DNA of 63,994 nt, from assembly GCF_000143415.4 (NCBI RefSeq), contig NW_003314335.1:870661-934654 (forward strand). The letters are read 5' to 3'. The notes under the pieces are model-generated. The model searched no databases and was not told the origin of the DNA. It was given only the letters and a program-made list of their open reading frames with translations. This DNA is from Selaginella moellendorffii (Eukaryota; Plantae; Lycopodiophyta). Position 1 is the stretch's first letter, and each line of letters opens with the position of its first letter. The translations under genes were made by a program, and so were the position numbers. Below, one piece after another: positions 2,394-58,597 of this stretch.

Positions 2394-2493
2394 NNNNNNN
2401 NNNNNNNNNNNNNNNNNNNNNNNNNNNNNNNNNNNNNNNNNNNNNNNNNNNNNNNNNNNNNNNNNNNNNNNNNNNNNNNNNNNNNNNNNNNNN
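2394..2493. other. Assembly gap (100 N)
   Basis: Run of n characters. Confidence 1.
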
Positions 2494-4899
2494 TCCAACT
2501 CCTTTAGCTCCAGCTGGAATTATATATAAACTCTATAAAATGCATGGAACTTACCACTCACCCTTTTCAAATTTGTGGATGCACTTTAACTCTTTTACAA
2601 TGCTCTATTGTTCCTCCAACTCTTAAATTATATATGAGTTTGCTTCCCACACAATTTATAATTTATCTCTAGAATGTATATGGGCTTTTCAATGGTGATC
2701 CAGCTCTTGCTCCACAAGAAGACCTCCATGGAAAGCTTTAAGCTCCATGAAAGTCAAGATTGTGCTCTTCCCCTTCACTTAGGGCTTTGGTGCTCCTAAC
2801 TCAGTTGCTCCTTAATGCCTTAGAACAAAAGCTTAAGGAATTTTAACCCTTACCTTTTATACTCTAATATCACATATCTTATCCACCTTTACCAAAGACC
2901 ATCCCTGAGCTTGAAAGCAGCACTCACTCCCAATGAAGCTGGAGTGTATCCTATGGCTCTCATTTTGTGCAAACCTTGTGGAAAGATTGAAAGCAGTTGG
3001 ATCATCTCCTCCTCTTTGAACTGCAAGTAACAGTCAACTCACAATCGGAATAATCCAAAACAGCTTACTTGTCTTGCTTCTGAACATGAAAGACCCATTT
3101 CCAAAACTTTAAGCAACTTTAAACAAAAAAAAAAGCTGTGACATAAACTTACATATCTTCTCGGGGCTTATACCATCTCCATGGACTGCAAGAGCATGCA
3201 CACGTAAACTCAGATGATCACTGCTTGAACAAGAATGTTAACTTTTTGCTTCTTTATTTTCTCATTTCCTCTCATTTCACAAGTAACTCTGCCACTTCCA
3301 CAAAGTCACCAATTTTCGTGATGGAAGCCCATCACGAAAATGTGATGAGGTGTGTTCCACAGATCTTGGAAGCAAACCTTGGCCCAATTGATAAACTCCA
3401 CTCTATCAAACATTGACCTGGATCCTGATACCCTGGATCAAAGGTGACTTAGACAGGATCCTAGCTCTTACCCATGGATCTAACACTATGGAGAGGGACT
3501 CAACATCGCCTGTCAAGAGAAGCTGGGACTCGATAGTGCCTGCTGAGAGAAGCTGGGTGACAGCACCCACCTCACGAGTCTGAAAAATCAACGCCACAAA
3601 TCCATGACTGGGTGAGTGAGCGCAGGCAGATTGATCAGACCTGGGCTACATGGCAATGACAGCAGCAGTGTGGCAAGGGTGGCATGCTTGAGCATTTGTC
3701 AGGGTTAATCCTGCCCCCCAAATTCAAATAATAGGGTCCCATCAGCAGTGGTAGTAGCGCTTGTCGTCACTCCATCGACAGCAGCGGGTCAAGCATTCTA
3801 GGATATTTTACGCTTACAAAGTGGTCATATCACTCGTGAAAGTTAGCATGTTGAAATAAAAAACACTGAATAGTCATGTTGTAGTTTCAACCGGCTTGCT
3901 CCTGATCTAGTGAGTTTGAATGATAAAAACATACAAAAAACTCATCAATCAACTACCCAAAATTTTGTTCTTGGTTTTGGCTTGTTTGCACATCATTGTT
4001 GTGGTTTCAATCTTGTCATTACCATGTGGTCTTGGCTATCAGGCTCCCACTTCTGCTGCTACAAAGCACTTGAATCTCCATAAACATCCTTTTTAATTGC
4101 TATAAATTCTTGAGAGAATTACTATGCAATGTTCTTGAATCATGGCCCAATTCTTGATGTAGATTATTAAAACCTCTCAATCTCCCACTGGTTTTACTCT
4201 CTAGTTGCTACTGTTTGCACCTTTGTATAATGCAATGCCTCAAGTATTCAGTGCATCGAACGCCTTGAAGGCTCATCCTCCTCCTTGTCACTAGCCTCTT
4301 GGCCAGCAAGTGCCATGCCCAAGATCAACGAGCCAATGCTCTAGTACTATGAAAGTAGTGAAGAGACATGAGACTACCACATGGACTAGTATACTAAATA
4401 CTGTGTTGTGCACTATGTGTACATCTGCCCAGCTCCAACCAAGCACACAGCTGTTTCACACAGTATAGAGGAAGGGACACAACCAACCTTGAACAGGATG
4501 AAATCGATATTCATAAGAAGCTGGACAACCTGAGGTGGAATGACGGAGAAAAGAGTGTCTCATGTACCAGCAGGGCTGTCAAGGTAGTCCTAAGACTCAA
4601 GAAGCAGGAAGTCTTGAAAAATGCCAAGAAACAACCACAGAGCCAAGGCATGGCTAGGAAACAAGTACTGGACCAGGCCTAAATAGTCTAGCCCACGAAA
4701 AAGGATGAGATTGAGGGATTATAGTAAATTATTTTGATGATCTCTTAAACTGTTCATTTGCTGAACTTTTCCAGACTAACCGCAATCTTTCCTCTTAAAT
4801 TTTTAAGAATATTATCTAATATTTAAAATTCATTCATTTATTCATATTCTGTTTTACATGGTTTTGCAGCACTCAGATAGAAACACGAGACTGAGGGAT

Positions 4900-6214: not shown

Positions 6215-8371
6215 ATGGATGTTGATTTTCGGTCTTCTGTGGATATTGTCAAGTCGTGCACCATTTCCCGAGACCTTTCCAGAGGGAAAGAAATTCACGC
6301 ACAGGTAAGTGCTGGGAGGCACTGTAGGAACCGATATCTCAATAACTTGCTGGTGGAAATGTATGGGAAATGTGGAGAAACTGAGCAAGCCCGTCGTGTC
6401 TTTGACACGATAAGAAATCCGAACTTATTCTCGTGGAACAACGTCTTGATTGCATATGCCCAGAACGGGAAGCTTCGAGAGGCTCAAAACATGCTGGAAA
6501 AAATGCCGCAGAGAGATTCTGTGTCCTGGACCGTCGTGTTATCAGCATATGCCGCTTCAGGGCATTTTGAAAAGGCCGAGCTGCTGTTCAATGAAATGCC
6601 GGAAAAGGACGACTTTGCGTGGAATACTATGGTTTCAGCTTACGCTGGAGGCGGGTTTTTGGAAGAGGCTGAATCTGTGCTTAAGGCAATGCCATACAAA
6701 GGCCCTGTTGCCTGTACGACTATGATTGGAGCATATGCCCAGGCTGGGCATATCGAAAAAGCCACCGAGATTTTCGACACGATGCCTCACAGGGACGTGA
6801 TCTCGTGGAATGCAATGCTGGTGGCTCACGCGGAGAATGACGATCTCTTAAAATCAGAGCAACTGTTCAATCAGATGCCCGAGAGGAGTCTTTCCTCATG
6901 GAATGCAATGTTGGCTGCGTCTGCTCGGCATGAAGATTTGGACAAGGCTAGAGATTTGTTCGAGAGAATGCCGCAGAGGAACATCCTCTCGTGGAACACA
7001 ATGATACAGGCTTGCATCGAAGCTGGGAATTTCGAGAGAGCGTCTGCCTTGTTCCGTATGATGCCCGTACAAGACACGGTATCGTGGACGACGATGATAA
7101 CGGGTTATTCCCGCGAGGGACGTATTGACGTGGCGAGGAGATTATTCGATGCGATGCCCGAGAGGGACATCGCCACGTGGAATGCAATGGTTGGAAGCTA
7201 CACCGCGAGCGGACAGCTGGCGGAGGCACAGAGGCTGTGTGACAGAATGCACGTGCATGACGTGATTACGTGGACTGCCTTGCTGGCAGGGTATGCTCAG
7301 GCCGGACAAATGGAAACAGCGGAGAGTATCTTCTACAAATTGCCAGGTAAAAATATCGTATCGGCAAATGTGATGTTGATGGGATACGCTGAGAGTGGCA
7401 AAATATTAAAAGTAAAGGCACTATTTGATAGGTTACCGCGGCATGACACAATGACATGGAATATCACCATTTTTGCATATGCCCAAACTGGGCATCTAGA
7501 AAATGCCAGAGTTTTGTTTGATAAGATGCCATGGGCGAATTTTACGTCTTGGAGGTGTATGATATTAGGCTACGCACATCATGGAAACATTACAGAAGCT
7601 AAGAAAATCTATGATAGCATACGAAGAGAGAACATAGTTTTGTGCATAGATATGATCGTAGGTTATGCCCAAAATGGGTATCTTGTAGAAGCCAAAGATT
7701 TATACGATGAGCTTGAGTTTGATAGCATCGTGGCATCTACGGCCATGGTAACTGCATATGCCCAGCACGGGCATATCACCGAAGCGCAAAATGTGTTTAA
7801 ATCTCTGCCGTTCAAGAGCCTGATGTCGTGGACGGCTATGATCGCAGCATATACCCAAAAGGGGCATTTGCATACCGCAATGGAAATGTTCGTGAGAGTG
7901 CCCAACCGGGACGTGACGCTGTGGAGCGCGATCGTGGCCGCACACTCCCACCACGGGCATGGGAAGCAAGCGGTGGAGATCTTCCGGAGGATGATCGTGG
8001 GTGGCTTTCTCCCAAACGAGACCACTTTCGTGTCAATCCTCGCTGCTTGCAGTAGAGCCGGACTGGTGGACGAATCGATCGAGTTCTTCGTGACCATGAT
8101 GGCCGAGTGTGAGATTCCACCAAGCTCCAAGCACTACGAGTGCTTGGTGGATCTACTCGGACGCTCGGGCCAGCTCAAGGAAGCAGAAGAGTTATCGCAG
8201 AAATTCTCAAAAGGAAACTTACCGGGGAGGAAGTCGACACTGCTTGGTGCTTGTTCGCTCCACGGTGACGCCGCGAGAGGGTCGCGGAGCGCTCGAGAGA
8301 TGGATCCCTGGGACTCGGCAGCTTATGTCTTGTTGTCAAACTCTTGCGTTGGAAGATCGAGAGGAGTGTAA
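6215..8371 (+). CDS. PLS-class PPR protein with a long run of 31-aa (SS-type) repeats, degenerate E region, no DYW
   Basis: Intronless ORF with repeated SWNAM..AYAQ.GH...A..LFD.MP.RD motifs; C-terminal HYECLVDLLGRSG...AAYVLLSN. First ATG is at 6215 (the ORF track starts at a TTG at 6182). Confidence 0.93.
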   Translation: MDVDFRSSVDIVKSCTISRDLSRGKEIHAQVSAGRHCRNRYLNNLLVEMYGKCGETEQARRVFDTIRNPNLFSWNNVLIAYAQNGKLREAQNMLEKMPQRDSVSWTVVLSAYAASGHFEKAELLFNEMPEKDDFAWNTMVSAYAGGGFLEEAESVLKAMPYKGPVACTTMIGAYAQAGHIEKATEIFDTMPHRDVISWNAMLVAHAENDDLLKSEQLFNQMPERSLSSWNAMLAASARHEDLDKARDLFERMPQRNILSWNTMIQACIEAGNFERASALFRMMPVQDTVSWTTMITGYSREGRIDVARRLFDAMPERDIATWNAMVGSYTASGQLAEAQRLCDRMHVHDVITWTALLAGYAQAGQMETAESIFYKLPGKNIVSANVMLMGYAESGKILKVKALFDRLPRHDTMTWNITIFAYAQTGHLENARVLFDKMPWANFTSWRCMILGYAHHGNITEAKKIYDSIRRENIVLCIDMIVGYAQNGYLVEAKDLYDELEFDSIVASTAMVTAYAQHGHITEAQNVFKSLPFKSLMSWTAMIAAYTQKGHLHTAMEMFVRVPNRDVTLWSAIVAAHSHHGHGKQAVEIFRRMIVGGFLPNETTFVSILAACSRAGLVDESIEFFVTMMAECEIPPSSKHYECLVDLLGRSGQLKEAEELSQKFSKGNLPGRKSTLLGACSLHGDAARGSRSAREMDPWDSAAYVLLSNSCVGRSRGV

Positions 8372-17879: not shown

Positions 17880-19130
17880 TGCATATCTTAATTACTGATG
17901 AAATAAATTTAATTAATATTAATTTCAAATACTTATATTAGATATACTTATATACCTTGATATATTGGTAATCACCAGTTTATAGAAGACTCATTTTTAA
18001 GCCCAGAAATGGCTAATAAGTTTGGTTTTATTATTGGCTCTAATTATTTTTATAAAAAATAAATTCTATTATTTCAATATTATTTTTAGTTTAAAAATAA
18101 AGTGTTTCACAAATTTTTAGTTAATAAAATTAGAGTATTCTAATTACATCATTTCTTTCTCTAGAACATAATTTATTAAAATGATTAATTACCAGATATA
18201 ATAGTATAAAAAGATTAACTAATAATAAATACCAAATCAAACATATTTTATATATAATATTAAATAGTATTTATTTTTTAAATTTTAATTTTAATTTATA
18301 ACTGATATATTTGCTAATATTTATAAAAACCTAATATTGAAGACATTCATATATTATACTAAAAACATACATACCATGAGTAATTATCGCATAAAGTTGT
18401 TACAAATATTTTGCATAATAAGTTTTAGTTTTTTATATTATAATTTTATTATACACATCAGCCAAAAACTATTATAATGTTTTTGATAAGGATGTGTGAT
18501 TTATAACTCAAACATGAATACAAATTTGTGTTCATATTTAATTATATAATTACATGTGGGAGTACTCCGATTGGCGATGTATTCTGGTACTTATAACTCA
18601 TAATCCTTTAAGACGAGCTGATTAGGAGAATGAAACTTTCAGATCAATTTTGTAGCTTGTTCTGATTTATATCTATATTTTATTAGTTTTATTAAAATAA
18701 AATTTTAGAAATTTTTATAATAATCATTTTGTTCTTCTCTATTTTTTATTCTAGAAATATCAATAAAGAACTTGAATTCAAAACATTTAATAATAAGAAA
18801 ACAGTAAAATAAAAATATATAGTGAAATCATGAATGTTTAAAATTTATAATAATAAATAAAATATTACAAAGTCATGTAAAACTTAGTCTCTAGGTTTAA
18901 CTTAGTTCACTTTATTCGTTAGTGAATTATAAGTAATTTATGAAATATTAAATATAAAAGTTTTAGTCACTTTTCTTAAACTATTAAATATAAATAATAA
19001 ATTTATATATTTAATTTTTAAATATAACTAAATATACTATTTGTTTTGACCTATTTAATGTTATTTGAAATCTTTTTTGTTGAACTATATGAGATAGTTA
19101 TTTTAACAAGAACTTTAGCAAAGCTGGAAA
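17880..19130. other. Extremely AT-rich non-coding tract
   Basis: Visibly almost all A/T, no ORFs of 60 aa or more, abrupt change from the flanking genes. Confidence 0.8.
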
Positions 19131-19246
19131 ATGTTAGATTTCAACACCTGGCAGCACAGCATTTGCTGGCCAATTGTTTGCCAAGACAAAAATTATAAAT
19201 TTTCTTTCAGAGAAGATTACAGGCAACAAACTTCATGTCGGAAGCC

Positions 19247-22200
19247 TTATTCTCTTCGCATAGAGGCTATGAGCCGCGTCGTCTGTTTGCGTCTCAGCAA
19301 GTGTACCAGCGTCGAGTGGAATTCCTCCGTCGACTCGCAAGAGTTGAGATGCAGCGTCACGTTTCTGAACGGTGATGGCGGCGCAAATCTGTTGCTGCTG
19401 CTGCTACTGCTGCTACTGCCGCCACCCCTGTACTGCTGGCTTACCTTGCTCGCCAGCAGCGCGTTTGGCGAGCAAAACAGCACGTCCAGATTGTTTTCCT
19501 CCCGATATATGTACAAAATGTCCTCCACGTTGTTCTCCGACAGCAGGCTCCACTCGCAGCCGCTCGACTCCAGCTCCTCCCCGCTGGTGCTCTTGACTTG
19601 GACGAGCAAGTTCTCCGTGAGGAGAACGAACACACCGCGCTCGAAGAGAGGCTGGCATGTTATGTATGTCTGCAGAGAAGAACAAAAGCACTAAGTTTCA
19701 AGCTTTTCTCTACACGAAGTTACCTCTTCTCTGAATCGGCCATCGTCGGCTTCTCGCAAAACCGCCGTGCCAAGTGCCTCGTTCCACGAATATGGGAGAA
19801 GTGGCGAGCCTGGCTCGAGGTGTCGAGGAAGCCTGAGGCGCATGATTCTCGGCTGGGAAGGCTGGCTGCTGTTTCGGATGCTTTGAGCTGTTTTTCCAGC
19901 CACTTCGAGCATACTCGCCGCCGGTCTGGCCACGGCTCTTATCACACCGACAGCCATTCCTACGAAAAAAGATGCAGTGTTAAGAGGTGTTTAGAACCGA
20001 CTTGGGATATCCAACCTGAAAAGACGCCAGGAATTCCATGCCTCTCTGCCCCCCTCACGGAGGATTGGAGTAGACCTGTCAATCCCTCCAAAAACTCGTT
20101 GACAATGCTGCTGTCTCGAGACCACTGGTTCTCGCCTTCGTTCATGTAGTCTTGATCAAGCGCCAGAGCCGCCATTCCCTGTAGCAAATGATCGATAACG
20201 TAAGAAACAGTTAAGCAACGACAAAACCACGAACCTTGCGAGCTGCCTTGCTCATTTGCGTGGCTGCATTGCTAAATGCAAAAACTGTATTTCTAAACAA
20301 ACTCCTCGTTCCTACTGTAACACCCTGTACAATTTGTCCCGGATTCTGCAGTGATCGAGCTATGCTTAATGGACAGAAACTAGTATGAGCAAAGTGGCGA
20401 ACTTTTACCTGTCTGATGCTTGTGGCAGGAGCGTGAACGAAATCCCACACACCAGATCCAAGGCTTCTCAAAAAGCTCATTGGATTCCCGAAAACATCCG
20501 CCGAGCCAAGAACCTGGAAGAATGCAACATATGAAACAGAACCTAGCAACGTAAAAAAAAGAGAACGCAAACCTTGTAGAGTTCGTGAAGCAGCTGGCGA
20601 GTATAGTGACGCTGTATGATTCCTAGGATTGAGTTCCAATTGGCCATGGGATGTGCCAACGTTAAATGACGAAGACGAATAGGTGCTCCTTCCACATCGG
20701 CCAAAGCAATCAGACGTCTCTGTGGGATTTTAAGAGTTAAAAAGCTTGCTTTACGGCACGAAAACAAAAGAGAATACCTGTACCAACGATCCTGTCACCC
20801 ATAACAGGGACTGTGCAGCTACACCACGGCTCTCCTTCGGAAGCCAGGGAATGCTTGAAAAGCTGCACATAAGAAAAGGGAACTTTCAAAAACAATGTTC
20901 AACTTGCAAAGAATCTCAGTGTTTTTACCTCACAGTAAGCTCCAGCGGGTCGATATGAAAAGCCTCAACGTAGACCTTCCTCCTCTGCTTGACAGAGATG
21001 ATGAGCTTCTGTGTCGGACCTTTGGCAGGCTCTACTGCGGCATTATCGGGCCATGTTTTGTAAGACTCAATAGGCTCCATCGTCTCGACGAATCTCAAGC
21101 TGCTCAGAACGTTTGAAGAACTACCCCATTCGGAGCGCTGTAACTTGAAAGACATAGATTTCTCGGTTCCCGTAGCAGACCCTCCAACAAAAAGACCTTT
21201 GAAAAGTCCCAACAGGCAGGTTAAGTTGCGTTCTTCCAACTGTAGACGCAATGGAGCAATGCTGTAAGATAACACATTGTAAGAAATATCACAATGCTCG
21301 CACAACTCAGTACCTCAAGTAGATGCATTGGTAGCAATGAACCGAGCCGATTGGATGCCTCCATTTTGAGACAATAGCAGAGAGTGCGGGGTTCTCGCTC
21401 TTCTCCTGTGCTAACTGTCGAGACGAGTTCCATTCACTGCTTATTATGTCTCTCATCAAGATGCCCGAAGACTTCGCCGTAGAAAGTAGGACGGGATAAA
21501 TGGCATGGCGGAGTTGGTTGTCGACTTGCAGCAATGCGATTTCCATTTTCATCTTCTGCTCCAACTGAGTTTGGAAAAACTGCAACTCAAAGCCTCTAGC
21601 TGATGCCAAAGCAAGTTCCTGCCAATAATTTTCGAGTCATATCAGTAGCGACACACATAGAGCAGTACCTGGGGAGTGGTGTCCACAAGCGAGATTGCGA
21701 TAGATGCCAGTTTCAAAGAAAAATCTTGTGAAGAACCCTTTCTGGAATCTCTGAAAGTCTCTTCTATGCGAGGATTTAGCATTCGTAAGTCCTTTGTGGT
21801 ATGGAGAAGTAAGTCGACAACGCTAAGGACCTGATAAATGCAAGTCAAATGAATAGATGGATATTACAAAATTGCTTACTCTTCTTGAAGCCTCTGCATG
21901 CACAGAAACAACAAAACGGCCCTCTGGTTTCTGTAAAATCCCACACGAACCATTTGATCGCAAACAGTGATATTAAATTGTCTTACAAACCTGTCCAGAA
22001 GCATGGAACTGGATGGACGGATAAGACTTGACAACGTCCAGTGGATATGTTCCAAGAGTTCCTTCGCCTGGAACCTACAACGGGAATCAAAGACAGAAAA
22101 ACAATGCTGAGAGATAGTAGTGAAGACTAGAAAGCTTTACCTCAATGACAAGCTGTGGAGGCAGGCAAGGCTCATCCCAAGCATAGTCACACGAACTATA

Positions 22201-31481: not shown

Positions 31482-32593
31482 TCATGATTGGATTGGAGTG
31501 AGAAAAGCTTGTATGTGCTTGTTGAATTCCTTGGGCCTTTCCACTTGTGGGACGTGTCCTGTCTTTTCAATCACAACCAGCGTCGCATTCTCGCCCAAGT
31601 GTCTGGAAAGAAGCTCAAGTGAGATCCAAGAACTGTAAGGCTCGATTGGCAATCAATCAATCACTCACGCTTTTAGCCGTTTGGCGAGCTCCAGATCGAA
31701 GATCCGGTCGTGCGATCCCACGAGAATCAAGACCTCCTGTTCCAAGAAAGTTCTGTAAGTGTCAGAGAAATCCTTTCCAAGAGAGTGTCCTTGCCTGTGA
31801 AAGCTTTGGCAGCGGCTGCGCGGCCTCGGTGCCGATAACCAGGCCGTCGAGGAGCTCAATCCTCTCCTTCCTGTTGCCGCCATACACCTGGATCCAAGCA
31901 CAGTCAACGCACGGTCAGCAAGAGTCAATAAGGATTCAACGCGAGAGCCTTTACCTCCATGAGATCCCGGACCAAGCAATCTGGGAGCCACAGGCGCCTG
32001 TAGAGGCAAAGCTGGATGCTTTTCTTCTGGACCGCGACGGAGGTGGGCATGAGGACCTCGTGGATGTGCCTGGCCTGGAACGCGTCCAGGGTCGCATCGT
32101 TGCTGTGGGGATCCATGCAAACGCCCGAGCTCGCGATCACTACCTTCTTGACGCGCACCGGATCCAGCTCCGCCATCCGGAACGCCACAAATCCGCCGTA
32201 GCTCGTCCCCGCCACCGCCGCCCCGTCGACGCCCTCCGCCTCGAGGATTTCGAGCATACAGCGCGCCTGGAAGAACTCGGACCGCGCGCGCTCGTCGCTG
32301 GTGGTCGATCCGCCAAAGAAGACGAGATCGGGCACGTAGAGCGCGAAATTTCGGGACAACTCGGACAGCTGATGCTCCCACCCGGCGATCCCGTTGGCCG
32401 CGAAGCCGTGGACGAGCATGAGCGGCGGCTTGGAGGGATCGTAGCCCGGGCTCGCGCGATCGGGCACCCAGCAGCGCATCACCGTGGCGGAATCGCGCAG
32501 GGTGAACGTCTTTTCGATCAATCCCAGGCGCCGGCACCGCTTTTCCAGCCGTCGTAGCATCGATCGAACAAGCGAGAAGCCGAAGCACGCCAT
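31482..32593 (-). CDS. Alpha/beta hydrolase (MAGL/ABHD6-like lipase family), 4 exons
   Basis: LVHGFAANG oxyanion motif, YVPDLVFFG, nucleophile elbow GTSYGG, acid in GSHDRIF, His in KTGHVPQVERP; stop TGA at 31482-31484. Confidence 0.9.
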
Positions 32594-32737
32594 TGCCCTA
32601 TAATTCCTTTGTCCGAGAACCCTTTAAATACATTGTGAAGAACAGAATATGCTTATTTCGAGCGAAGAATATGCTTCTAGGGTTAGGTCAAGTTCGCTCA
32701 ATTTGGAGGCTCTTGTCACTTAAAGCTTCTACTTTTT

Positions 32738-35700
32738 CTAGCTGTTCAAGAAAGTCATTTGCTCCAAGAGTCGAAACTTGGTGTCCGCCATTCCAAGCCA
32801 TCTCCTCTTAACTCGAACCTGCAAGAAATCCATCCAGGATCTAATCACTGCTGCTAAGATTGAAACAAAACGAAACGAAAACAACGATCGTACTGGAACT
32901 GGGAGAAGCTGGCCGACTGCAAACGATGCCTTGATTGGGTCTGATATGGATCCGAGTAATCCAGGGACAGTATCAGCCTGGGATAAACAAAAGCACGATC
33001 AAAACGAAGCGTAGCGATTGAAGCAAACCTCGGGTAGCAACTGGCGACAGCGATCCACGACTTGCTTTGCCAGGTCCAGGAGCTCCTCCGTGTGCTCGCA
33101 TTCAATATCGTCGAAGAACTCCACCTGTGAAAACTAAAGTTTATAACGAGCGAAAGGTATAAGCGTACCTGTCCGATGTTGAGACCAAAAGAGCCTGGTT
33201 GCACCCACATCCTGTGCACAAAGTCCATTCAGTGTTTCAAAAGGGTGTGATCGTAAACGCTTACTTGTCGAAAGGAAGACGAAACCTCTGGACTCCGTGA
33301 GCAACGACATAAGATCGGCAATCCTTCTCGAAAAGATACACCTTGAGGTTCTGGCACACGTAACAAAGTGGCATCAGTTAAGATGAAATCCGGAGATATG
33401 AAATACTCACAGCCATGGTTCCCACTAGCTCTTGCGCAGTTTGCCAGTGCCAGTAGCTGGTAAGTCCGAATGGTTTTCCTTCTTCAACGCAGTGTCGAAC
33501 CTGGAGGAAGACTAAAATTTGTTAGCACCTGCGTGTCGGAATAGAGAAAAAAGAAAAGAAAGAGACCAGATGCCTGTATCGAGGTTCGTGCATGTGTAAC
33601 GGCATCGACCATCCTGGAAACAATACCGTGTCCAGCAGTGCGAGAGGCATCTTCACCGAGCTATCGGAGCAATGAGATTCATATGGAGCCGGAGCCGGAG
33701 TCGCAGTCGCAGGAACTTCGTACGAGCTCTTAACCTCCACTGACGTTGTGGTGCAACAATTGCTACCGTTGGTAACCTTCAGAGCGTTATCCTGTTCTGA
33801 GCTCCCCGACGCTCTAGCACCACCAGCCTGAGTCTGGACTTTACTGTGCCTAAGCAAGTAAGTATGTAACCGCTTAAGAAGCGAGCCAGGATCCACAGGA
33901 GCTGATCGCGGGCTGGTGTGCCGCTCCGCAGCTGCGTTCTTTGGGAAAAAGAGAGAGTTGCTAATAGCGTTACTGTAAGCAAGGAAAAGAATCGGTTAGT
34001 ACCATGTAGCTGGCAGTAAAATTCATACAAACCATACTCAAAAAAGTTATGACCGGAAATTCGTGCCATTCCTAATGTCATACGAAGAAATTCCGTAAAA
34101 GCATCTATCGGTAGCTTTCTCTGATCATCTGCATCAAGAAATCAGTAAACGAAAATTATACACGTATAGGAGCGTACCATCAGACGAAAGTGACAAGCCA
34201 ACAACACCAGCAGTGAGATGCCCCGTTCCAGCAAACAGTGGTCTTAAGCTGTTTATGATCTTTGGCCTTGGGACCTTTGGGCTAGTATACAGAGGAGCCA
34301 AAAATGCGCCTGCTCTGCAACCTGGACAATAACATTAGCCATCGTTGTTCGCTGCACGGAAACACTCTCACCTGCAACTTTCGGGAAACATCACGGACAA
34401 ACGCTGTACAAACTCTGGGTAAGGATATCCTGAATACGTACATGGAAAAAGTTAGCCAGGGAAAAGAAAACATTACAGTTACCTGGAGCGCCTAGTAAAA
34501 TCATGTGAGGATTGTTTCGAACGATCGCAGCTTCCATATCTGGCAGATTGGGAAGACCCGTTGTAGTTGTATGGAAAGCTGTGGCTTTTGTCCCGGGCAG
34601 ATATGCCACACACAAAATCATCCGATAACCATCGTCTATGGTGGCCACGGACTCGTCACTCATTGGAGAGGCCTGGCTTGTGGCACCGCTGGAAGCTCCT
34701 CGAGGCACTCCACCTGGACCACCCTCGGCGACAGCTTCCGAAACTACAATCCTCTCAACGTCTGGCACGGCACTTGTGTTTCCTGGACCGGATGATTTCG
34801 TGTTGAGAGACGCCCCACCGCTTTTCTCTTCTTCCTTCTCCAATGCTAGTTCTCCATTCTTACTTTCCGGATCCTTCTCCATCTTCTTACACTGAAGTGC
34901 CTGCTCTTCGGACTTTCCGACTTCTTCAGGAACTTTCGCATTGCCAGCTAGAACATCCGTCGCGCTAGAAGCCTTGAGTTCCTTGTCAAAAGCAACTAGA
35001 TCTTCGTTGTCCGGAACCACGCCGGGATTCTCTCGCGTCCACCGAGCACAGTCCCCAACCAGAGCTTTGAAATCTTCCACTGTATCCTCGTCCGGAAACG
35101 CGCTAGCAGCTCTCAATGTGAGACCACCCTCATGATCTTGCTTGACAGCCAGAGCTCTCACATCGCCATCCCCAGCAACGTCCACACCAGCAGCCTTGTA
35201 CCCGGAAGAACTGGAAACCGAAGGAGCACCGAGCTTCTTCTCGGCACCACCGCCTCCTGGGCTTGTAGCAGCCGGAGCAGCGACGTTCCATAGATCCGCC
35301 ACGCAACCAATGAATGGAGCAGCGATCTTTGCTGGAGCACTACCACCTTGTGCTGTTAAAACCTCCGAAAATGATCGTCCCAGTTCTTCCAGAGCTGCCG
35401 CGGATGATGGATTGTGCTTGGAAACAAATGCCACGGCGAGAGTGGGGGCATTTGTCCCGACGAGCGAGCAAGCTTGCGACCAGGCCGGCAATGCAGACTG
35501 GCCCTTGTCGCTGTTGACAACCACGGTCGCAAAGTTGAAGATCCTTCCATCGGCATCAACCTGGCTGCGGTAGAAATTTCCAGCGACTGGAGCATCGCAT
35601 TCCCCTGTGGCGATCGATGAGCTCCACCGCAGGCTTACCCTAGCTTGAAAATCTGGAAATACTTTCCTGCCTCTGCCGCCACTGTGCCGGTTCGATCGAG

Positions 35701-35782
35701 CTCTCAGCAAAGACGCAGCTGAGAATCCCCCGCGATGCAACATTTCCCTCGCGCAATCTGGCGCTGGAAGGCGATATTTCAT
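32738..35782 (-). CDS. Multi-exon gene: putative transit peptide + FIST_N-like domain (split by a long low-complexity insert) + C-terminal Lon protease N-terminal substrate-binding domain
   Basis: LON-N signature MPLALLDTVLFPGWSMPLHMHEPRYRHLV..CVEEGKPFG..VGTMA..VAHGVQRFR..VEFFDD..KRRWLGMADTKFRL. FIST-like segments PTLAVAFVS..PFIGC, LCVAYLPGTKATAFH..LPNL, PHMILLGAP and LFAGTGHLTAGVVGLSLS. Start ATG is at 35782 or 35743; stop TAG at 32738. Confidence 0.8.
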
Positions 35783-36066
35783 CGATCGAGGAAAGAAGGA
35801 AGCGCTTACCGCCCTAGCGACAAGGCGCTCGTCGAGCGCTTTGAGCGCCTTCTGCCCTAACCATTACCCCCCTTCCTCGCTTCACACAAGATTTTAATTT
35901 CCTTGGATCCAATCCTAGGTTGCGCGGGAAGAATGAAAGGAGAGATCCTCGTGACAATCCAAAGATCTTGCTCTCTAGATTCCAGTCGACAATGCAAGAG
36001 TTCTAGAACTAGAATCTCTTCCAGAATTTCTTCCGTTCTAGATGAGGAGGTTCCAATTGCTAGGGA

Positions 36067-37650
36067 ATGAGAATCGATGCCCTCGCGAGCAGTCTACGAT
36101 CGTGCTGCGCGGCCAGGAATTTGCTCCAGGGAAGAAAGATCCACGCGCTCATCCTCGAGCGCGGCCTCGAGGATCTCCACCTCCACAACCTCCTCGTCCA
36201 GATGTATGGCAAATGCGGCAACGTCCACGACGCCCACGCCTCCTTCTCCCAGATCAAGAACCCTAATCTCTTCTCGTGGAGCGCGCTGCTCGTGGCATTT
36301 GCCCAGAATGGGTATCTGGAGGAGGCAAAACGGGCATTCGATCGAATGCCACAGCGCGACGTCGTGGCGTGGAATTCGATCCTGGGCGCCAACGCCCAAA
36401 ACGGGCAATCGATCGATGCTGAGAGATTCTACGAGAGAATGCCTGGGCGTGACGTGATCTCCGCGAATTCGATCGTCTCGGCGTTTGCCAGGAGCGGCGA
36501 TCCGGCCGGCGCGTGGAGGGCCTTCGAGGGCGCCGCGCGGCGCGACGTCGCGCTGTGGACGTCCATGGCGCAGGCGCGCACCGCGAGAGGGCAGCTCGAT
36601 CTGGCGCTGGAGACGCTCCATCGCATGGCGCTGTGGAACGTCTTCTCCAGCACGGTGATGATCGCGGCGCTGGGAAGGAGTGGCGATTTAGAAGCCGCGA
36701 GGGAAGCGTTTGATGCCATGGGCGAGCGCAATGCAGTGGCATGGAACGCGCTGCTCACCGCCTACGCGGATGCCGCGCGGATGGACGCGGTGGGGGAGGT
36801 CTTTGCACGGATGCCGCAGCGGGATACCGTGCTGCATACCGCGCTGCTCGTGGCGTATGCCCAGGCCGGGCATCTCCACGACGCGCGGGAGCTCTTCCAC
36901 GGCATGCCGCAGCGTGACGTCGTGTGCTGGAACGCCATGCTGGCATCGTCCGCGCGGTACCGCCATCTACCGGCGGCACGGGAGTTCTTCCGCCGGATGC
37001 CGCAGTGGAGCGTCACGAGCTGGAATTCGTTCTTTACCGCCAGTGCCCAGAGAGGGCATTTGGATCACGCGAAAGAGCTCTTCGACGCCATGCCCGGGAA
37101 GAATCTAGTGTCTTGGAACGCGCTACTGGCAGCGTTTGCGCGGAATGGACACGCCCATGACGCGCGATTGATCTTCGATTCCATGGAGGAGAGAAATCGC
37201 GTGAGCTGGAACGCGGTGATCGCCGCGCATGCCCACAGCGGGCATGGCGAGGAGGTTCTAGGGCTCTTCCGGGCTATGGTGCTCGAGGGCGTGGATCCGG
37301 ACGAGGCATCGTTCGCGAGCTTGATGCTGGGATTCAATCACCTGGGGATGGTGGGCGTTAGCCGCGGGCATCTGGTGGCCATGCGCGACGATTTTGGAGT
37401 GGCGCCAGGGAGGGATCACTACTGCTGCGTTGCGGATGGATTGGGGAAGAGTGGGCGATTGGGCGAGGCGGAGGAGCTGATCAAGACGATGCCGTTTAGC
37501 GCGGATGGATTGGCGTGGGGGAGCCTTGTGGCTGCCGGATTGATCTGCTTGGAGACGGAGTATGCCGCTCACGCCGCTCGGCAAGCAGTGGATCTAGATC
37601 CCAGGGATAGTGGCAACTTTGTGCTTTTGTCAAACGCTCATGCTAGCTAG
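36067..37650 (+). CDS. PLS-class PPR protein (527 aa) rich in SS-type repeats, GC-rich, E region, no DYW
   Basis: Intronless ORF with 31-aa repeats; ends HYCCVADGLGKSG...GNFVLLSNAHAS*. Confidence 0.92.
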   Translation: MRIDALASSLRSCCAARNLLQGRKIHALILERGLEDLHLHNLLVQMYGKCGNVHDAHASFSQIKNPNLFSWSALLVAFAQNGYLEEAKRAFDRMPQRDVVAWNSILGANAQNGQSIDAERFYERMPGRDVISANSIVSAFARSGDPAGAWRAFEGAARRDVALWTSMAQARTARGQLDLALETLHRMALWNVFSSTVMIAALGRSGDLEAAREAFDAMGERNAVAWNALLTAYADAARMDAVGEVFARMPQRDTVLHTALLVAYAQAGHLHDARELFHGMPQRDVVCWNAMLASSARYRHLPAAREFFRRMPQWSVTSWNSFFTASAQRGHLDHAKELFDAMPGKNLVSWNALLAAFARNGHAHDARLIFDSMEERNRVSWNAVIAAHAHSGHGEEVLGLFRAMVLEGVDPDEASFASLMLGFNHLGMVGVSRGHLVAMRDDFGVAPGRDHYCCVADGLGKSGRLGEAEELIKTMPFSADGLAWGSLVAAGLICLETEYAAHAARQAVDLDPRDSGNFVLLSNAHAS

Positions 37651-37944: not shown

Positions 37945-38462
37945 ATGGCTTCCAAACTTGTTTTGGTCTCAATTCTTACTGTTGCTCTCTTTGCTTTTGC
38001 ATCTGCCACCATAACAAAGGTTGTACAGTTATATGTTAGGAGCATGATCTTGATATAATGGTTTCTTCTTTTCTTTTCCAGTGCAATACCTTCACCATCC
38101 AAGGATCAGCCCAGTTTGTTTTCGGGCAAAACGAGTTTCAAGTTGTTGCGAGTGATGGTGTCGGGGATCGAGATGGATCCGTCCAAACGTTTGCAGCCCC
38201 TTTGACTGGAAACCCGGGATGCATCTACCAAGGAATAATCGCCGACACCGGCAGTCTGGATTTCCAGGTCTCCCAGATCAAGTGTGGCAATGATCGGGTG
38301 GAGTTCATGGGTGACGCTGGAAGTTCCACCCAAGGCTCTTCAACCACGTACGCGATTGTTGGTGGTACTGGCCGATATGTTGGAGCCACTGGAACTGTGA
38401 CAGAAGTTTCACTGGGTGGTATGAACTATCAAGTCACTGCTAATATCAAAGTTTGCAACTAG
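37945..38462 (+). CDS. Secreted 151-aa dirigent/allene-oxide-cyclase-barrel-like protein; exons 37945-38019 and 38082-38462
   Basis: Signal peptide MASKLVLVSILTVALFAFASA; phase-0 GT-AG intron; motif YAIVGGTGRYVGATG; beta-strand-rich; 4 Cys; AATAAA downstream. Confidence 0.75.
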
Positions 38463-38642
38463 AGAGATTTGAAGAATGTAATAAACTATAATAAAGTTGA
38501 GCCCCACTTTTAGTGGGTAAATCAAAATCTTGTTTCGCGTATTATAATCATGGGATGATAATTAGATAGTGATACATTTTTTTGGTCTTTTATTGTCAAT
38601 GAAGGACGCAATAACTGGTCAGACGCATGCTCTTCCTATTGC

Positions 38643-38713
38643 AAAAAGGTTTGGGTATTGATCAGTGCCTCTCGCATGCTAAGCGAGTGCTCTACCATCT
38701 GAGCTATCCATTT
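38643..38713 (-). pseudogene. tRNA-Ala(AGC) pseudogene or tRNA-derived fragment
   Basis: Minus strand reads TAGCTCAGATGGTAGAGCACTCGCTTAGCATGCGAGAGGCACTGATCAATACCC then AAACCTTTTT. The D and anticodon arms match plant tRNA-Ala(AGC); the acceptor and T stems are broken. Confidence 0.8.
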
Positions 38714-38869
38714 CCACGATGCAAACCCTCCCGGGTGCTCGATACCTATTGGGAGCTATATATCCCACTCTGAGTGGCAGAAATTGGGACATATTTTGAT
38801 GTAGACTGTGAGGTGAATGCAATCTCGAATCAGACTGAGCAGTGCTAGTGATTTAAGAATGACGCGAGA

Positions 38870-39000
38870 GGCAGCAGCTTCCTAGTGGAAGCCAAGAAGA
38901 TCTTCAAGAAAATGAAGAAGCACAATATGGTCCCTTAAACTGGACTTTGGCTATGCGAAAAAATGGCTGTATTTGGAAGCATGAGGTGTTGAGAGATGTC
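38870..39000 (+). pseudogene. Small decayed PPR fragment
   Basis: SFLVEAKKIFKKMKKHNMVP* followed by frameshifted GYAKNG. Confidence 0.45.
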
Positions 39001-42000
39001 AAATCAAAGAGCTGGATAATATTAATACCATCCTAAATAAAATTTACATTAGAGGATCTTTGCAACAACAACACTTGTTACTACAAGTGTCATGCATATT
39101 CTTCTTATATTATTGATTTTATTTAAAACAATAATTCATACTGTGAGGTCCAAATGTACGGCTATAATGCCGTATACTAATATTAGCGTAGTGGGATTTT
39201 GGTAACTGTCAGATTGATTTCAATCTGAACCATTCGCTCCTATATATAAACTAGGGTTTTTGCATTAACTGATATGTATATTTTTTATATTCCCTTTCCA
39301 TATTCCATATACTTATATTAATGGAGATGAGGGGCACTTTTGATTGTCTCTGAGGAGTGTTTGGGTTTGGGATTTTGGTTTAGCTCTAACTTTTGCATCG
39401 TCTAGATCTAACTTTTTCCATTTCCTTTCTTTTGTTCTTTCTTTTTAGGATTTTGGTTTACATTTAACTTTTGTATTCTTTTCCTTCTAGCTTTTTTTCA
39501 TTTCTCTTCTTTTGCTCTTTCCTTTTCATTCATTTTTATGGTAGGGTAGTAGTCTTTTCCTCCTTTGACTCTAGAGCAACAATTAATGCAATTGCTTGAT
39601 GCTATGTGATTGCAATTGAACAACCAAACTCAGTTGATAATGGTATTTATAGCACGTGGTACAGCTCCTTCTACTGTTGGTGCAAATCATCACGTTCAGC
39701 CGGAGTTCTTTCATGGAAATCCTGGGGATGATGTGTATTATTAGTTTGATCACTTCATGGTGATTGCCATATATCATTTTTGGGATGATGCTTGATGTTT
39801 GTGGGAGTTTCCTACGTATCTCCAAGGGACGGCACTGTAGTGGTACAACGGTTTGAGCATAGCCACTCATGAAAACTGGAGTGTTCTTCTGAACGTCTTT
39901 AAACGCACATTTGGATATACCAACAATTGTGATGATGCCTTCCAATAATTACATCATCTTCATCAATGGCTCTTTAAGTTAGTGATGCAATTTAGCATTC
40001 GTTTCCGAAACCTCTTGCTTCATGCAGAGCTAAATATGTTAGAGTGAATCAAGTTAAGAATGTTGTGGCTAACACTTTGTCAAGATCTTGTCAAACTTGT
40101 GCATGCACGTGCTCCAGCCACTCTTGATGATGCTCTTCGTTTAGCACAATGTTATGAAATATCGCCTCTTTTAGTTCTTGTTGCACACCCTTCAGCTCCA
40201 CTTTTTGTGGGTGATGGTTCTGTTCCAATGGAGGTTGAAGCTTTTGCTGCTCAAGTTCAAGGATAAAGGCAAGGACGTGGTTGTGGCCGTGATGTTCGCT
40301 ACTAGGTATGTGATGAAGTTGGTTACACTTATCAGTATTGTTGGCATTTTCTGGATTGGCGGCCTCTATTTCCTGGGTGGAGACTTTGGCATCAACAACG
40401 TCCTATTGGGGTTGCTGCAGTGGAAGGTCTGAACACTGAAATACATATGGGAAACAAAGAGTCACACGAGTAATGGAGGGACCTTGCACGAATAAGTTAG
40501 TGCCTTTTCCATTTTTTTTTCGAAAGTATTATTAAGGGGTTCATTTGGCACCAGTTCATTTAGTGTTTACTTTCCAAACTCATTTTTATAACAAAAGATC
40601 TCTTATTGTTCTTTCTATATTGGTTAATATAGATTCAAGTTGCTCGACCTGTTGCCATATGTTGCCATTTACACTTGCATCGTGGGGAAGAGTCAGTTTT
40701 CATTCTTTATGGCAATGGCCGTATACATGCATGTACACGGGATGAGGCAAACCTAGTTATGCATGTGGGCGATCTCAAGCTTGAGTTGTAATCATTGCAA
40801 GTGGTGTTGAGTCAAGCTTTTGACCTCATCCTTGGTTGCAGCATAATCATGCTAAATGTGACTTTAAGGCTTCTCCCCCTTGTCTCATACTTCCTTATAT
40901 TTTATTCATTTCTCCCACTTCTATACTTTTTTGTTCTTTTTCTTTTACCTTTGCTTCTATTACTTTTGTTTCTTTATTACTTCCTTCTATATTTCTATCT
41001 TGTTCTGCTCTTCCTTTTTTCGATCCTTCCAATAGTATTTGTGTTGCAACAGTTAACTAGCTCATGAAAGAGTATGCCAATCTCTTTGAATTTGACCTAT
41101 CATCTAGAGCCAAGATTGCCACACATCATCTAATTCCAACCAGTGATGCTCGTTCAATCAAAGTTCCTGTTCATCATTGGTCACCCAAAGAGATCAAAAT
41201 TTTACATGCAAAAATCAAGGAAATGTTGGAACAGGGTGTTATTCGAAAGTCACAGAGTCCTTGAGCATGTGAACCTTATCTTATGATAAAACCTGATGGG
41301 ACTATTTGTTTTTGCATTGATTATCGTCCATTAAACGAAGTGACGATCCAATTGTGTACTTTCTTCCTCAGACTGTTGATCTCTTGGATTGTCTAAGGAG
41401 AAGTCATTGGTTTACCAAGCTAAATCTTGCTTCTGGGTACTAGCAAGTACCGATGCCCGAAAAAGATATTCTTAAGATTGCTTTTTGCACTCTATTTGGT
41501 TTGTACGAGTTATTAGTCATGCTGTTTGATTTGAACAATGCTTTAACAACTTTGTAACAGATGATGGATGAGGTTCTTTGTGATATGCCAGAAATGATTA
41601 CTGACCTCATTGATGATGTTTTGATCCACTTGGAGGGGACATAGGAGGAACACGTTCGTGATGTTTGTAAAATGTTGGATCAGCTATAGGATATTGATTT
41701 AAAGTTGAAGTGGTCAAAGTGCATGTTTGGGTCCAAGGACACGACTTATATTAGGTACTGTATTTCTTGTAAGGGTTTGCAAGTTAATTCTGACAAACTT
41801 GTGGTTATTCTAAAGTTCCCTACTTCAAATTGTGTGAATGATGTGCAATGCTTCTTGGGCAAGGTGCAATATCTCAGTTATTTTATGGATAATCTTTCTG
41901 ATCGCATTGCACAATTGCGAGCATTGCTGAAGTTATCAACGTCATCTTTCATTTGGTCTTTAAATTATGAGCGGGTGTTCATGGATCTCAAAGTGTTATT

Positions 42001-55846: not shown

Positions 55847-56272
55847 TGTAGTGCATTCTATCTCTTTCCCCTTAAGCCAATTAGAAAAGGGGCAATTGCT
55901 TGATAAGAGAGCCTTTAGTGGCTATTTTATCCCCATTTATCCCCCAAGAATCCAAGGATCCATGATAATAATATATCCAAATCTCATCCCATGATCATAT
56001 GCATTACATTCACCCCCCCACATTACATATCTTGCTTAAGGGTATATTATATTTTTAAGTAGCCACTAATCAATAGAAATTGAATCAGTGCCATTTGCTT
56101 TGATACTACATATAGCACACCCTATCTCTCTCCCCGTAAGCTAATTGAAAAAGGGGCACTTGCTTAATAAGAGAACCCTTAGTGGTTATTTTATCCCTAT
56201 TTATCCCCCAAGATTCCAAAGATCCACAATGACAGTATATTCAAATCTCATCCCATGATCACATGCACTATA
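55847..56272 (-). mobile_element. TRIM (terminal-repeat retrotransposon in miniature), 426 bp
   Basis: 162-bp direct repeats at 55847-56008 and 56111-56272 with TGTAGTGCA...TGCATTACA-type termini; perfect TSD AGATT (55842-55846 and 56273-56277); minus-strand decayed Met PBS TAGTATCAAAGC and G-rich PPT in the 102-bp interior. Confidence 0.9.
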
Positions 56273-56497
56273 AGATTGAACAATATTTTTTGGGAAATTT
56301 TGCAGCACCTCTAAGTTAAATAGTCTCTGTCTAAATGGATATGCCTATCATGGTGTTTAGAATGATGGTTGAGAATCAGACCAATAGCAAATTGGTCCAT
56401 GAAAGGATTTTTATTATAGTTTGTGGAAGGAAATTTAAGTTGGACCTTTAATTATATATTATTATATTATAGAAAGCTGTATTTTAAAAAAATCTGC

Positions 56498-57643
56498 TGA
56501 GTGCATAGAATATAGAAAGGGAATACAGAAAATGTGCATATCATTTACCCCAAAAACCCTAGCTTATATACAAGAGCGAGTAGTCGAAATTGAAACCAAA
56601 CTAACGGCTACTAAAATCTCACTATGTTAATATTAGTATACAGCATCATAACTGTACACTTGGACCTCATATGATCCCCTCCTCTTGGAATAATGGAAAA
56701 TTGTCAAGGTTCTCTTATTGATGTGCTAGGATCTGGAAGAATATGTAAACAACTAAATTTTCCATTCTACTTTAGTCACTTAACCTCACCTCTGACCACT
56801 TGGAGGAGTCTTATTCACAACCTCCATAAGTCCCATTCAGGACTTGGGGCTTGCTAACCCCGAGAATGGCATCCATGCCACTCAACCTTTGCACTTGATC
56901 CAAGTGCTCCACATGTCCGATCCCATGACCGACACCCTAAAGTACCACCGACCTCTCAGCCTGTTACGCTAAGGCCATGCCTATTTACCTTGGTCAAACC
57001 ACATGTTGTAAAATTGGGAAAACAAACTAACACCAAGTCATTTGCTTTGTGCTCTACAAATGTATGATGATGGGAGTTGTAACGCTATTATTGTCCCACT
57101 TGTACATGGCCTAGGTGTTCAGTAAACTTTGTTGAGACAAGTGGAAGAATGTTTGTCAAATACTAATCCCATGATCTAGCATTTGCAATTCGTAGCAATC
57201 ATAAAGGTAAACCCAACTCTATTGACAATATTGGATCATGACCATATAAGAGTTTGTATGGTGAAGCACTAACTCTTTCCTATAGTGAAGGAAAGAACAA
57301 AAAAAAAAGAAATGAAAAAAGCTAGAAGGAAAGAGAAATCTAGACAATAAATTTAAATCAAAATCCCAAAAGGAAATAACAAAGAAAAGGAAATGGAAAA
57401 AGTTAAATCTAGACAATGCAAAAGTTAGATCTAAACCAAAATCCCAAATCAAGAACAATCAAAGATGCCCTTCACTTCCACCAATATTAATGCATGGAAT
57501 ATGGAAAGGGAATATAAAAAATGTGCATATCAATTAATCCATACAAGAATGAGTGGTCCAAATTAAAACCAATCCACGGCTACCAAAATCCCACTACATT
57601 AATATTAATATACAATATCATAACTGTACACTTTGACATCACA
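56498..57643 (-). mobile_element. Internally deleted non-autonomous copy of Gypsy family B
   Basis: Two reverse-complement copies of the family B LTR (56498-56671 and about 57488-57643), PBS TGGTGGAAGTGAAGGGCATC and PPT. The interior joins the 5' leader (matches about 39340-39545) directly to the integrase tail (matches about 48985-49270). Confidence 0.85.
56744..56994. mobile_element. Truncated family A LTR fragment inserted in the deleted family B copy
   Basis: Begins TGTAAACAACTAAATTTTTCCATTCTACTTTAGTCAC; reverse complement of about 905-1154. Confidence 0.8.
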
Positions 57644-58597
57644 TTGTGTGCTTTAATCTTATGTATTAATCTAATTAATCACTTGAAAGCTTATAACTTT
57701 AAACAAATCTTATTGAATATCAACCATTAGATGGTAGAATAGACTAGAATATACTAGAAGTGTTTAAAAAAGCTTATGTTTATAAAATATAAAGACAAGA
57801 TTAATCTAAATGAAAAATAACCATTATATGGTAGAATATCCAAAAATATCCTAAATATATTCATTACTTTACAAGAAAACCAAAAAACAATCCCTCACTC
57901 GATCAAACAGTGCATAGCATGTTTATTTTCTAATTTGCCAGCCCAAAGTTTCACATGGTAAGGTGTATCCTCTCCCTATTACCTTATTAAATTACTTAAT
58001 ATTTTATGCTTTAAAAGATATAACCATTTAACAATACATGTTCCATACAATGCTTGGTTTTATTTATTCTTTTATAAAATATTTTCAACCGTTAGACTCA
58101 GGAATATCCAACTCTAAGAATATTCACTTGCAGTTCCTTTTATCCTCCAAGAGACAAAAAAAAACCGGAGCCTCACTGAAAAAGCAATGCAGCAAAATTA
58201 GGCCTTCATTGCACCTAACCTCATAGTCGACCGAGTGCGTAGAGCAGCACAGCTTACTGGCGTTTGATCCTTCGTATTAAACCTTGACCTTGTGCGTTTT
58301 GTCGCTCCTGAAAGCACTGTGAATGTCCCCCTTCAATCTCAACACTGGAAGAGCAGTACCTGAATCGTTCGCTTTCCTCCGTTTTTTCTTGAAAATCTCA
58401 GGGTAACTTCCAGGCTGCAGAACATGTCGTTAAAAAAGCCAATAAAACTGTGGCATATGGCCATCAGTTTCTCGAAAACTGTACTCAGAACTTCTGCTCA
58501 CAACAGAGGGCCTGTGATCGCTGCATTAACACTGTTATGAAAAAAAGGTAAAGTTACCTACGGTGGTGTGCATCCCTCTTTTTCTTGGAAACCTGCC

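Follow-up and report, generated by a model that had tools for sequence, protein, structure and literature searches.

The 63,994-nt stretch of Selaginella moellendorffii DNA analyzed here (contig NW_003314335.1, positions 870,661 to 934,654; hereafter the window) harbors on its minus strand a single expressed nuclear gene, LOC112341049, the product of which combines known parts into a domain architecture that is new. The protein consists of four parts, namely, a presequence-like extension, a split FIST_N-like domain without FIST_C, a conserved segment followed by a linker, and a complete LON-N domain. The gene is real far beyond chance: it is transcribed and spliced, and no fewer than 10 other plant species conserve it. 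The identity and architecture of the protein are considered highly probable, and the explanation as a whole, which joins this architecture to a function inferred for it, is assigned a probability of about 0.6.

The coding sequence extends from 35782 to 32738 on the minus strand and comprises 11 exons, which together encode a product of 823 amino acids (aa). The exons, as defined by the joints in RNA contigs and a splice model, are as follows:

35782-34483, minus strand, exon 1
34429-34372, minus strand, exon 2
34314-34178, minus strand, exon 3
34128-34038, minus strand, exon 4
33972-33567, minus strand, exon 5
33500-33411, minus strand, exon 6
33350-33265, minus strand, exon 7
33211-33169, minus strand, exon 8
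33124-33029, minus strand, exon 9
32977-32894, minus strand, exon 10
32818-32738, minus strand, exon 11, including the TAG stop codon

Twenty public sequencing runs matched part of the stretch, and most of them shared ∼0.4-0.66 of its words, which is the expectation for spliced RNA. The RNA evidence was taken from contigs of four runs of four studies, placed on positions 32400-36000 of the window. The contigs defined ten introns of 44-75 nt, all of which showed GT..AG borders on the minus strand (CT..AC on the plus strand). A single contig of ∼1255 nt extended from 34641 in exon 1 through the small exons to ∼32900, and hence the C-terminal part of the FIST-like region and the whole LON-N domain are present in one transcript. 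Exon 1 was covered by overlapping contigs up to ∼35795, which were colinear with the genome over 34612-35795. Translation of the spliced sequence, which opens with the ATG at 35782 and closes with the TAG that ends at 32738, was identical letter for letter to isoform X1 of NCBI LOC112341049, annotated as an uncharacterized protein of S. moellendorffii and designated P0001 here. A preceding reading of the DNA letters without database searches (the sequence-only reading) had placed the gene at 32738-35782, which are exactly the end of the stop codon and the first ATG. Every motif listed in that reading was present, in the same order, on the minus strand: the 463-aa open reading frame (ORF) of the first exon (35782..34391) contains MLHRGGFSAASLL..., PTLAVAFVS, PFIGC, LCVAYLPGTKATAFHTTTTGLPNLP, and PHMILLGAP, while LFAGTGHLTAGVVGLSLS is encoded by exon 3 and VLFPGWSMPLHMHEPRYR by the end of exon 5. 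The same reading had regarded the two halves as one gene. They are joined in the RNA contigs and occur in the same architecture in orthologues, which rules out two separate genes; no transcripts showing separate genes were encountered.

Intron 2 was found to possess two acceptors 7 nt apart, resulting in an intron of either 57 nt (exon 3 from 34314) or 50 nt (exon 3 from 34321). The corresponding feature is as follows:

34315..34321, minus strand, 7-nt alternative inclusion (joint 34319>34370 (+2) in runs X5, X9, and X10; joint 34314>34372 in run X1)

The in-frame acceptor (34314) was observed in run X1 and is the one used in the NCBI isoform X1 model. Use of the upstream acceptor (34321) shifts the frame, and translation stops after 465 aa, so that LON-N is lost entirely, together with the end of FIST_N. 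It weighs against the reading of a four-part product that this frameshifted isoform was the assembled form in three of the four RNA runs (X5, X9, and X10), with the limit that contigs give no isoform proportions. The 7-nt alternative acceptor may represent regulated unproductive splicing, in which a truncated isoform or one prone to nonsense-mediated decay would be produced and the protein level could be tuned. Separately, within the loop-coding part of exon 1 (34612-34752), two contig versions were present in all four runs, differing at 34642, 34667, 34684, 34705, and 34722. These fit two haplotypes of S. moellendorffii.

The layout of the protein, numbered from the annotated start, is as follows:

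35603..35743, minus strand, probable organellar presequence, aa 14 to ∼60 (Arg/Ser-rich, acid-poor)
35273..35587, minus strand, block A, aa 66-170, candidate first half of FIST_N (DGR.F.FATVVV...ACSL...PTLAVAFVSK...PFIGC; conserved in all orthologues)
34634..35272, minus strand, loop insert of ∼213 aa, aa 171-383, separating the strand with IGC from that with LCVAYLPG and showing a high content of Ala, Gly, Ser, and Glu (from RNA colinearity and composition)
34124..34633, minus strand, block B, aa 384-500, matching the second half of FIST_N (end of exon 1, exons 2 and 3, and start of exon 4, with two introns inside)
33879..34123, minus strand, conserved tail after FIST_N, aa 501-560 (VP.DAFAEF.RM..GM.RI.G..F.D...S..LF.P.N; from the alignment)
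33654..33878, minus strand, variable linker, aa 561-635 (poorly conserved, length varying among orthologues)
32741..33653, minus strand, LON-N substrate-binding domain, aa 636-823, end of exon 5 to exon 11 (Pfam PF02190)

Most orthologues start with ML(R/Q), and their first 40 residues contain 4-8 Arg/Lys, many Ser, and 0-1 acidic residues; the Ceratopteris protein and the annotated Selaginella start carry two acidic residues in this stretch. The ML(R/Q) starts of these proteins line up with a second ATG of the Selaginella gene, at 35743 (MLHRGG...), where translation probably begins. Going by what is established about presequences, the N-terminus is probably a mitochondrial or plastid presequence. 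The Arg/Ser-rich, organelle-type N-terminus noted earlier from the letters was thus seen as a presequence-like start in all orthologues, and its reading as a targeting signal is likewise inferential. The loop of aa 171-383 is translated and not spliced out, as the RNA contigs follow the genome without interruption through this stretch. Its length and sequence vary among orthologues, its model showed a predicted local distance difference test (pLDDT) score of 22-35 with one helical patch, and it is predicted to be disordered. The conserved tail (aa 501-560) belongs to no recognisable family and sits at the position where FIST_C would be expected.

The C-terminal domain matched the Pfam family LON_substr_bdg (PF02190) with an E-value of 2.6e-14 and 54 bits (cut-off 28.7) over aa 639-822, corresponding to positions 4-199 of the 200 profile positions. 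When the exon translations were searched separately, only a sub-threshold LON match was obtained, while the full protein passed. Among PDB sequences, aa 630-801 matched best the Lon-like domain of cereblon (E 5.6e-5), along with the stand-alone LON-N proteins 7cay and 1zbo. The ESM Atlas model of aa 632-823 showed template-modelling (TM) scores of 0.83-0.88 over 185 residues to LON-N models, the nearest structural neighbours being bacterial stand-alone LON-N proteins of 200-225 aa (TM 0.88). PF02190 was also found in 10 of the 12 family members; the other two are fragments confined to exon 1. The LON-N domain recognized from the letters is thereby borne out by both profile and fold. No AAA+, S16/Lon_C protease, F-box, RING, or CULT domain was found in the Pfam search of the full protein and the 12 family members. 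No family other than LON_substr_bdg was recognized by Pfam, in keeping with the sequence-only reading, which had noted the lack of visible AAA+, protease, F-box, and RING domains; LON-N forms the C-terminal end of the protein. LON-N domains recognize substrates in Lon proteases and serve as a scaffold in cereblon. In comparison with the stand-alone LON-N proteins (Bordetella BPP1347, 1zbo; 7cay) and the N domain of Lon protease, the Selaginella domain is similar in having a full-length PF02190 match and TM scores of 0.86-0.88, but it is placed behind a FIST_N-like domain and is accompanied by neither an AAA+ nor an S16 protease domain.

The N-terminal half was searched with phmmer, using aa 55-575 as the query, exhaustively against 1.84e9 representative proteins. 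Only 12 proteins were matched, comprising orthologues, exon fragments, and two further proteins, P0011 (E 1.4e-4) and P0012 (E 5.7e-4). P0011 passes the Pfam FIST model (E 6.3e-19, residues 34-213), and P0012 is labelled "small ligand-binding sensory domain FIST" by JGI. A profile of the plant block B (aa 384-575, nine species), which carries the consensus LCVAYLPG.KA.AFH..T.LP.LPD.E....NNPHM.LLGAPG...F..RLS..FP..CRAGAF...PLF.G....GVVGLS.S., was compared by hhalign with these proteins. The probability was 97.3% for P0011 (E 1.8e-11, 92 columns, P0011 residues 88-179), 96.4% for P0012, and 97.6% (E 2.9e-12) for a joint profile of P0011, P0012, and a canonical Nonomuraea FIST_N+FIST_C protein. 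In the ESM Atlas, all feature neighbours and six of six structure rows of aa 395-575 were FIST families, with TM scores by query of 0.47-0.60. A Foldseek search of the block B model against 350,542 PDB chains placed FBXO22, to our knowledge the only solved FIST protein, at ranks 1-2 (E 4e-3, probability 0.95-0.96, TM 0.27), the model itself being poor. It is concluded from this homology that aa 384-500 make up the second half of FIST_N. Block A showed a beta-beta-alpha-beta-alpha-beta pattern in its AlphaFold2 model (pLDDT 55-73), and its IGC is invariant, as in the GCS motif of FIST; block A may plausibly be the first half of FIST_N.

Several results weigh against the FIST assignment. Even with the threshold relaxed to E<=10, Pfam gave no FIST match for the protein, its parts, or any of the 12 family members, and no FIST_C (PF10442) match for the protein and the family members. 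The hhalign comparison of the block B profile with the canonical Nonomuraea FIST alone gave 0.5%, so that the FIST link depends on the intermediates P0011 and P0012; this actinobacterial protein itself matches Pfam FIST at 3e-35 and FIST_C at 2e-23. Block A showed no signal against the N-terminal part of P0011 (hhalign 0.1%), and its ESM structural neighbours were mixed (AIRS, OmpA, and FIST). The AlphaFold models were poor, with a pLDDT of 40.5 for aa 55-600 (12 sequences) and 42.5 for aa 380-600 (17 sequences), and therefore the match to FBXO22 is a weak one. The FIST/NosP-like sensor domain proposed in the sequence-only reading consequently stood in part. Its second half (aa 384-500) was recovered by phmmer and hhalign, through P0011, and by ESM Atlas, with FBXO22 on top in Foldseek from the poor model, whereas Pfam remained silent on both FIST and FIST_C and the first half was not linked by profile comparison.

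These points could be taken to mean that the N-terminal half is not FIST at all and that the protein is a LON-N protein with a novel N-terminal extension, i.e., a lineage-specific domain carrying a short convergent or shared motif. The silent Pfam models, the result with canonical FIST alone, the lack of signal in block A, and the poor AlphaFold2 models all speak for this reading. So does the search of PDB sequences with the block B profile, which did not match FBXO22 and returned only 2gs5 and 2hrx at a non-significant E of 0.2. The 2gs5/2hrx match, to structures which we take to be YqgE/AlgH-like, was rejected because Pfam gives no such family for any member. A shape search of the ESM Atlas with the model of aa 55-600 gave a meaningless result and was set aside. 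A lineage-specific domain is nevertheless considered quite unlikely. The 92 aligned columns lie in the correct register inside the Pfam FIST region of P0011 and run through the LF.G....G.VG..L end of FIST_N, and the best local alignment of block B with the Nonomuraea protein, weak as it is, falls on the same homologous motif. The language-model and structure neighbours, which are independent of the profile comparison, are all FIST, and FBXO22 tops the PDB chains.

The second domain of canonical FIST proteins could not be traced. The hhalign alignments end at GVVGLSLS and do not reach FIST_C in either P0011 or the Nonomuraea protein; only ∼60 conserved residues follow this motif, and then the linker. 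As judged from its sequence, the protein is devoid of FIST_C. This bears on whether the N-terminal half could be a true NosP-like sensor of heme, nitric oxide (NO), or a small metabolite that switches the LON-N domain, making the protein a ligand-gated proteolysis adaptor, as the sequence-only reading in its full form had proposed. The FIST_N homology (phmmer, hhalign) is in favor of such a sensor, as is the binding of heme or NO by the FIST proteins NosP and CdpA (PMC8846402, PMC12570481). Also in favor are an invariant His427 (NPH), a mostly conserved His405 (AFH), and the nearly invariant Cys160 and Cys391, all of which recur in the FIST relatives P0011 and P0012. However, NosP-type sensors are composed of FIST_N and FIST_C, the latter of which is missing here, His405 is replaced by Val in Sphagnum and P0005, and what the FIST region of FBXO22 binds is, going by PDB titles, a substrate protein and not a small ligand. 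A true NosP-like sensor is therefore regarded as unlikely.

The split FIST_N-like reading of the N-terminal half can be set beside the bacterial FIST sensors (FIST_N PF08495 + FIST_C PF10442; NosP, CdpA). Residues 384-500 are in register with them through LP..P...PH..LLG, FP...GG/AG, and LF.G....G.VG..L, and block A shows the expected strand-helix pattern and GC motif. The Selaginella protein deviates from them in having no Pfam FIST match, no FIST_C, and a loop of ∼213 aa that interrupts FIST_N midway. As output partner, LON-N takes the place of the kinase, GGDEF/EAL, or MCP module of bacterial sensors, and the gene is eukaryotic, nuclear, and intron-rich, with a presequence-like N-terminus in its product. 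NosP in particular is a stand-alone FIST_N+FIST_C protein partnered with a histidine kinase, unlike the LON-N fusion encoded by this multi-exon gene. The characterized eukaryotic use of FIST known to us is the F-box protein FBXO22, in which FIST acts as a protein-binding module in a degradation pathway; FYVE-FIST proteins of oomycetes also appear among ESM Atlas clusters. FBXO22 (F-box + FIST_N + FIST_C; 8ua3, 8ua6, 8s7d, 8s7e) is a substrate receptor of SCF, and it resembles the Selaginella protein as the top Foldseek match of block B, a match that is weak in E-value, TM score, and the pLDDT of its model (42). It differs in having an F-box and FIST_C, and in its cytosolic/nuclear location as against the probably organellar one here.

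Since FIST and LON-N both occur in substrate receptors of E3 ligases, the protein could instead be a cytosolic or nuclear scaffold of the ubiquitin system, like FBXO22, cereblon, or LONRF, that joins an E3 ligase via an unrecognised motif. The best PDB sequence match of its LON-N (cereblon) and the best structural match of its block B (FBXO22) both agree with this, and a plant LONRF cluster was a structural neighbour of the LON-N domain (TM 0.83). In contrast to cereblon and LONRF, no CULT/Yippee, RING, or TPR domain is present in the Selaginella protein, and neither an F-box nor a DDB1-binding insertion was detected. Furthermore, the conserved ML(R/Q) N-termini, Arg/Ser-rich and acid-poor, point to an organelle, and the nearest LON-N neighbours in structure are the bacterial stand-alone proteins. 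A ubiquitin-system scaffold is thus held to be very unlikely.

The same order of parts with a C-terminal PF02190 was found in eight further species by phmmer and a word search followed by Pfam:

Diphasiastrum complanatum, lycophyte, 920 aa
Riccia sorocarpa, liverwort, 853 aa
Riccia fluitans, liverwort, 823 aa
Marchantia polymorpha (MPTK2_2g16260), liverwort, 882 aa
Marchantia paleacea, liverwort, 669 aa (model truncated at the N-terminus)
Calypogeia fissa, liverwort, 879 aa
Sphagnum, moss, 831 aa (cluster of 34 sequences)
Ceratopteris richardii, fern, 838 aa

A partial fern member of 471 aa was obtained from Adiantum nelumboides. Like P0002 and several metagenome ORFs, the Adiantum protein stops right after ...LLGAPG, which is the position of the first intron in Selaginella, and hence all of these represent gene calls of exon 1 only. 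A divergent transcript of the family from SRR8128906-8 (Logan), whose called protein is P0005, also carries PF02190 and forms a long branch in the tree. The start of P0005 was called too late, as block A and a presequence-like MWRLCRTLSP... are present upstream in frame (150-510 of the Logan SRR8128907 transcript); the true product predicted from this transcript is ∼110 aa longer than P0005. An environmental eukaryotic contig (JGI metagenome 3300060285, Ga0590115_0000610) was observed to contain blocks A and B at 2580-2876 and 6406-6594, ∼3.5 kb apart, and a degenerate second copy of the end of block B at ∼6700-6890. LON-N exons were undetectable within 6 kb downstream on this contig, and its family copy may be a divergent or decaying relative.

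In the maximum-likelihood tree, the liverworts were monophyletic and the remaining branches were unresolved. The tree fits vertical inheritance of a single-architecture family in liverworts, Sphagnum, lycophytes, and ferns. No seed-plant members were found in the exhaustive phmmer search or in the word search, the length window of which left out short LON-only proteins, and a FIST-less descendant may be present in seed plants. This agrees with the earlier remark that the architecture was not recognized from angiosperms. No members were seen in Physcomitrium and hornworts by phmmer or word search, where the absence is less certain. When 185,579 prokaryotic genomes were scanned for NPH..LLG, the most conserved motif of the family, 25 pattern matches were obtained, none of which was confirmed. 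The scan therefore furnished no evidence that a cyanobacterium or another prokaryote was the donor, and the endosymbiont derivation considered in the sequence-only reading gained no support from it. Public annotation describes the family only as "hypothetical," uncharacterised, or "Lon N-terminal domain-containing," and no literature was found on the family or on the FIST+LON architecture.

The protein contains no catalytic domain and is composed of two modules of the binding type; it would thus be non-catalytic and work by binding. With bacterial sensors and FBXO22 as a guide, the FIST_N-like module may have a small ligand or a client protein as its binding partner. For the LON-N module, Lon and cereblon suggest that unfolded proteins or proteins bearing a degron may be bound. 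Proteins with FIST and FIST_C sense NO or heme (NosP, CdpA), although the mechanism of binding is poorly known (PMC8846402, PMC12570481), and structures of FBXO22 bound to its substrate BACH1 have been determined (titles of PDB 8ua3 and 8s7d). Inside an organelle, the Selaginella protein could, depending on a ligand or client, serve an AAA+ protease system as adaptor, anti-adaptor, or holdase, feeding substrates to the proteases or shielding them. This sketch of an organellar adaptor, anti-adaptor, or holdase is tentative and appreciably less probable than the architecture from which it is drawn. A bolder version is that seed-free land plants keep a bacterial-type organellar ligand sensor, in which FIST_N would bind heme, NO, or a metabolite, gate Lon-N, and thereby control mitochondrial or plastid proteolysis, with tuning by the frameshifting acceptor and loss in seed plants; it is judged improbable.

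FIST is among the least understood of the widespread sensor domains. The combination of FIST_N with LON-N, conserved from liverworts to ferns, makes the protein a defined candidate for a binding or adaptor function in an organelle, and one that is present in such tractable models as Marchantia polymorpha (Mp2g16260) and Ceratopteris. The family further illustrates how a domain can escape standard profile annotation when a long loop, here predicted to be disordered, splits it. Should the FIST module prove to bind a ligand, the protein would be the first such sensor tied to substrate recognition of the Lon type.

The surroundings of the gene showed the following features:

36067-37650, plus strand, intronless PPR gene, 527 aa, with PPR repeats and a sub-threshold E-motif match
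31925-32593, minus strand, first exon of an alpha/beta-hydrolase (Abhydrolase_1, E 1e-16)

The PPR gene is divergent from the FIST/LON gene, with its ATG ∼285 bp from that of the latter, and the two genes may share a promoter region. The hydrolase exon lies on the same strand, ∼145 bp downstream of the FIST/LON stop, which is a very tight spacing. Elsewhere in the window, blocks of low GC content (0.33-0.40) were located at 1-4000, 18000-20000, 38000-42000, and 56000-58000 against a gene-rich background of 0.45-0.58.

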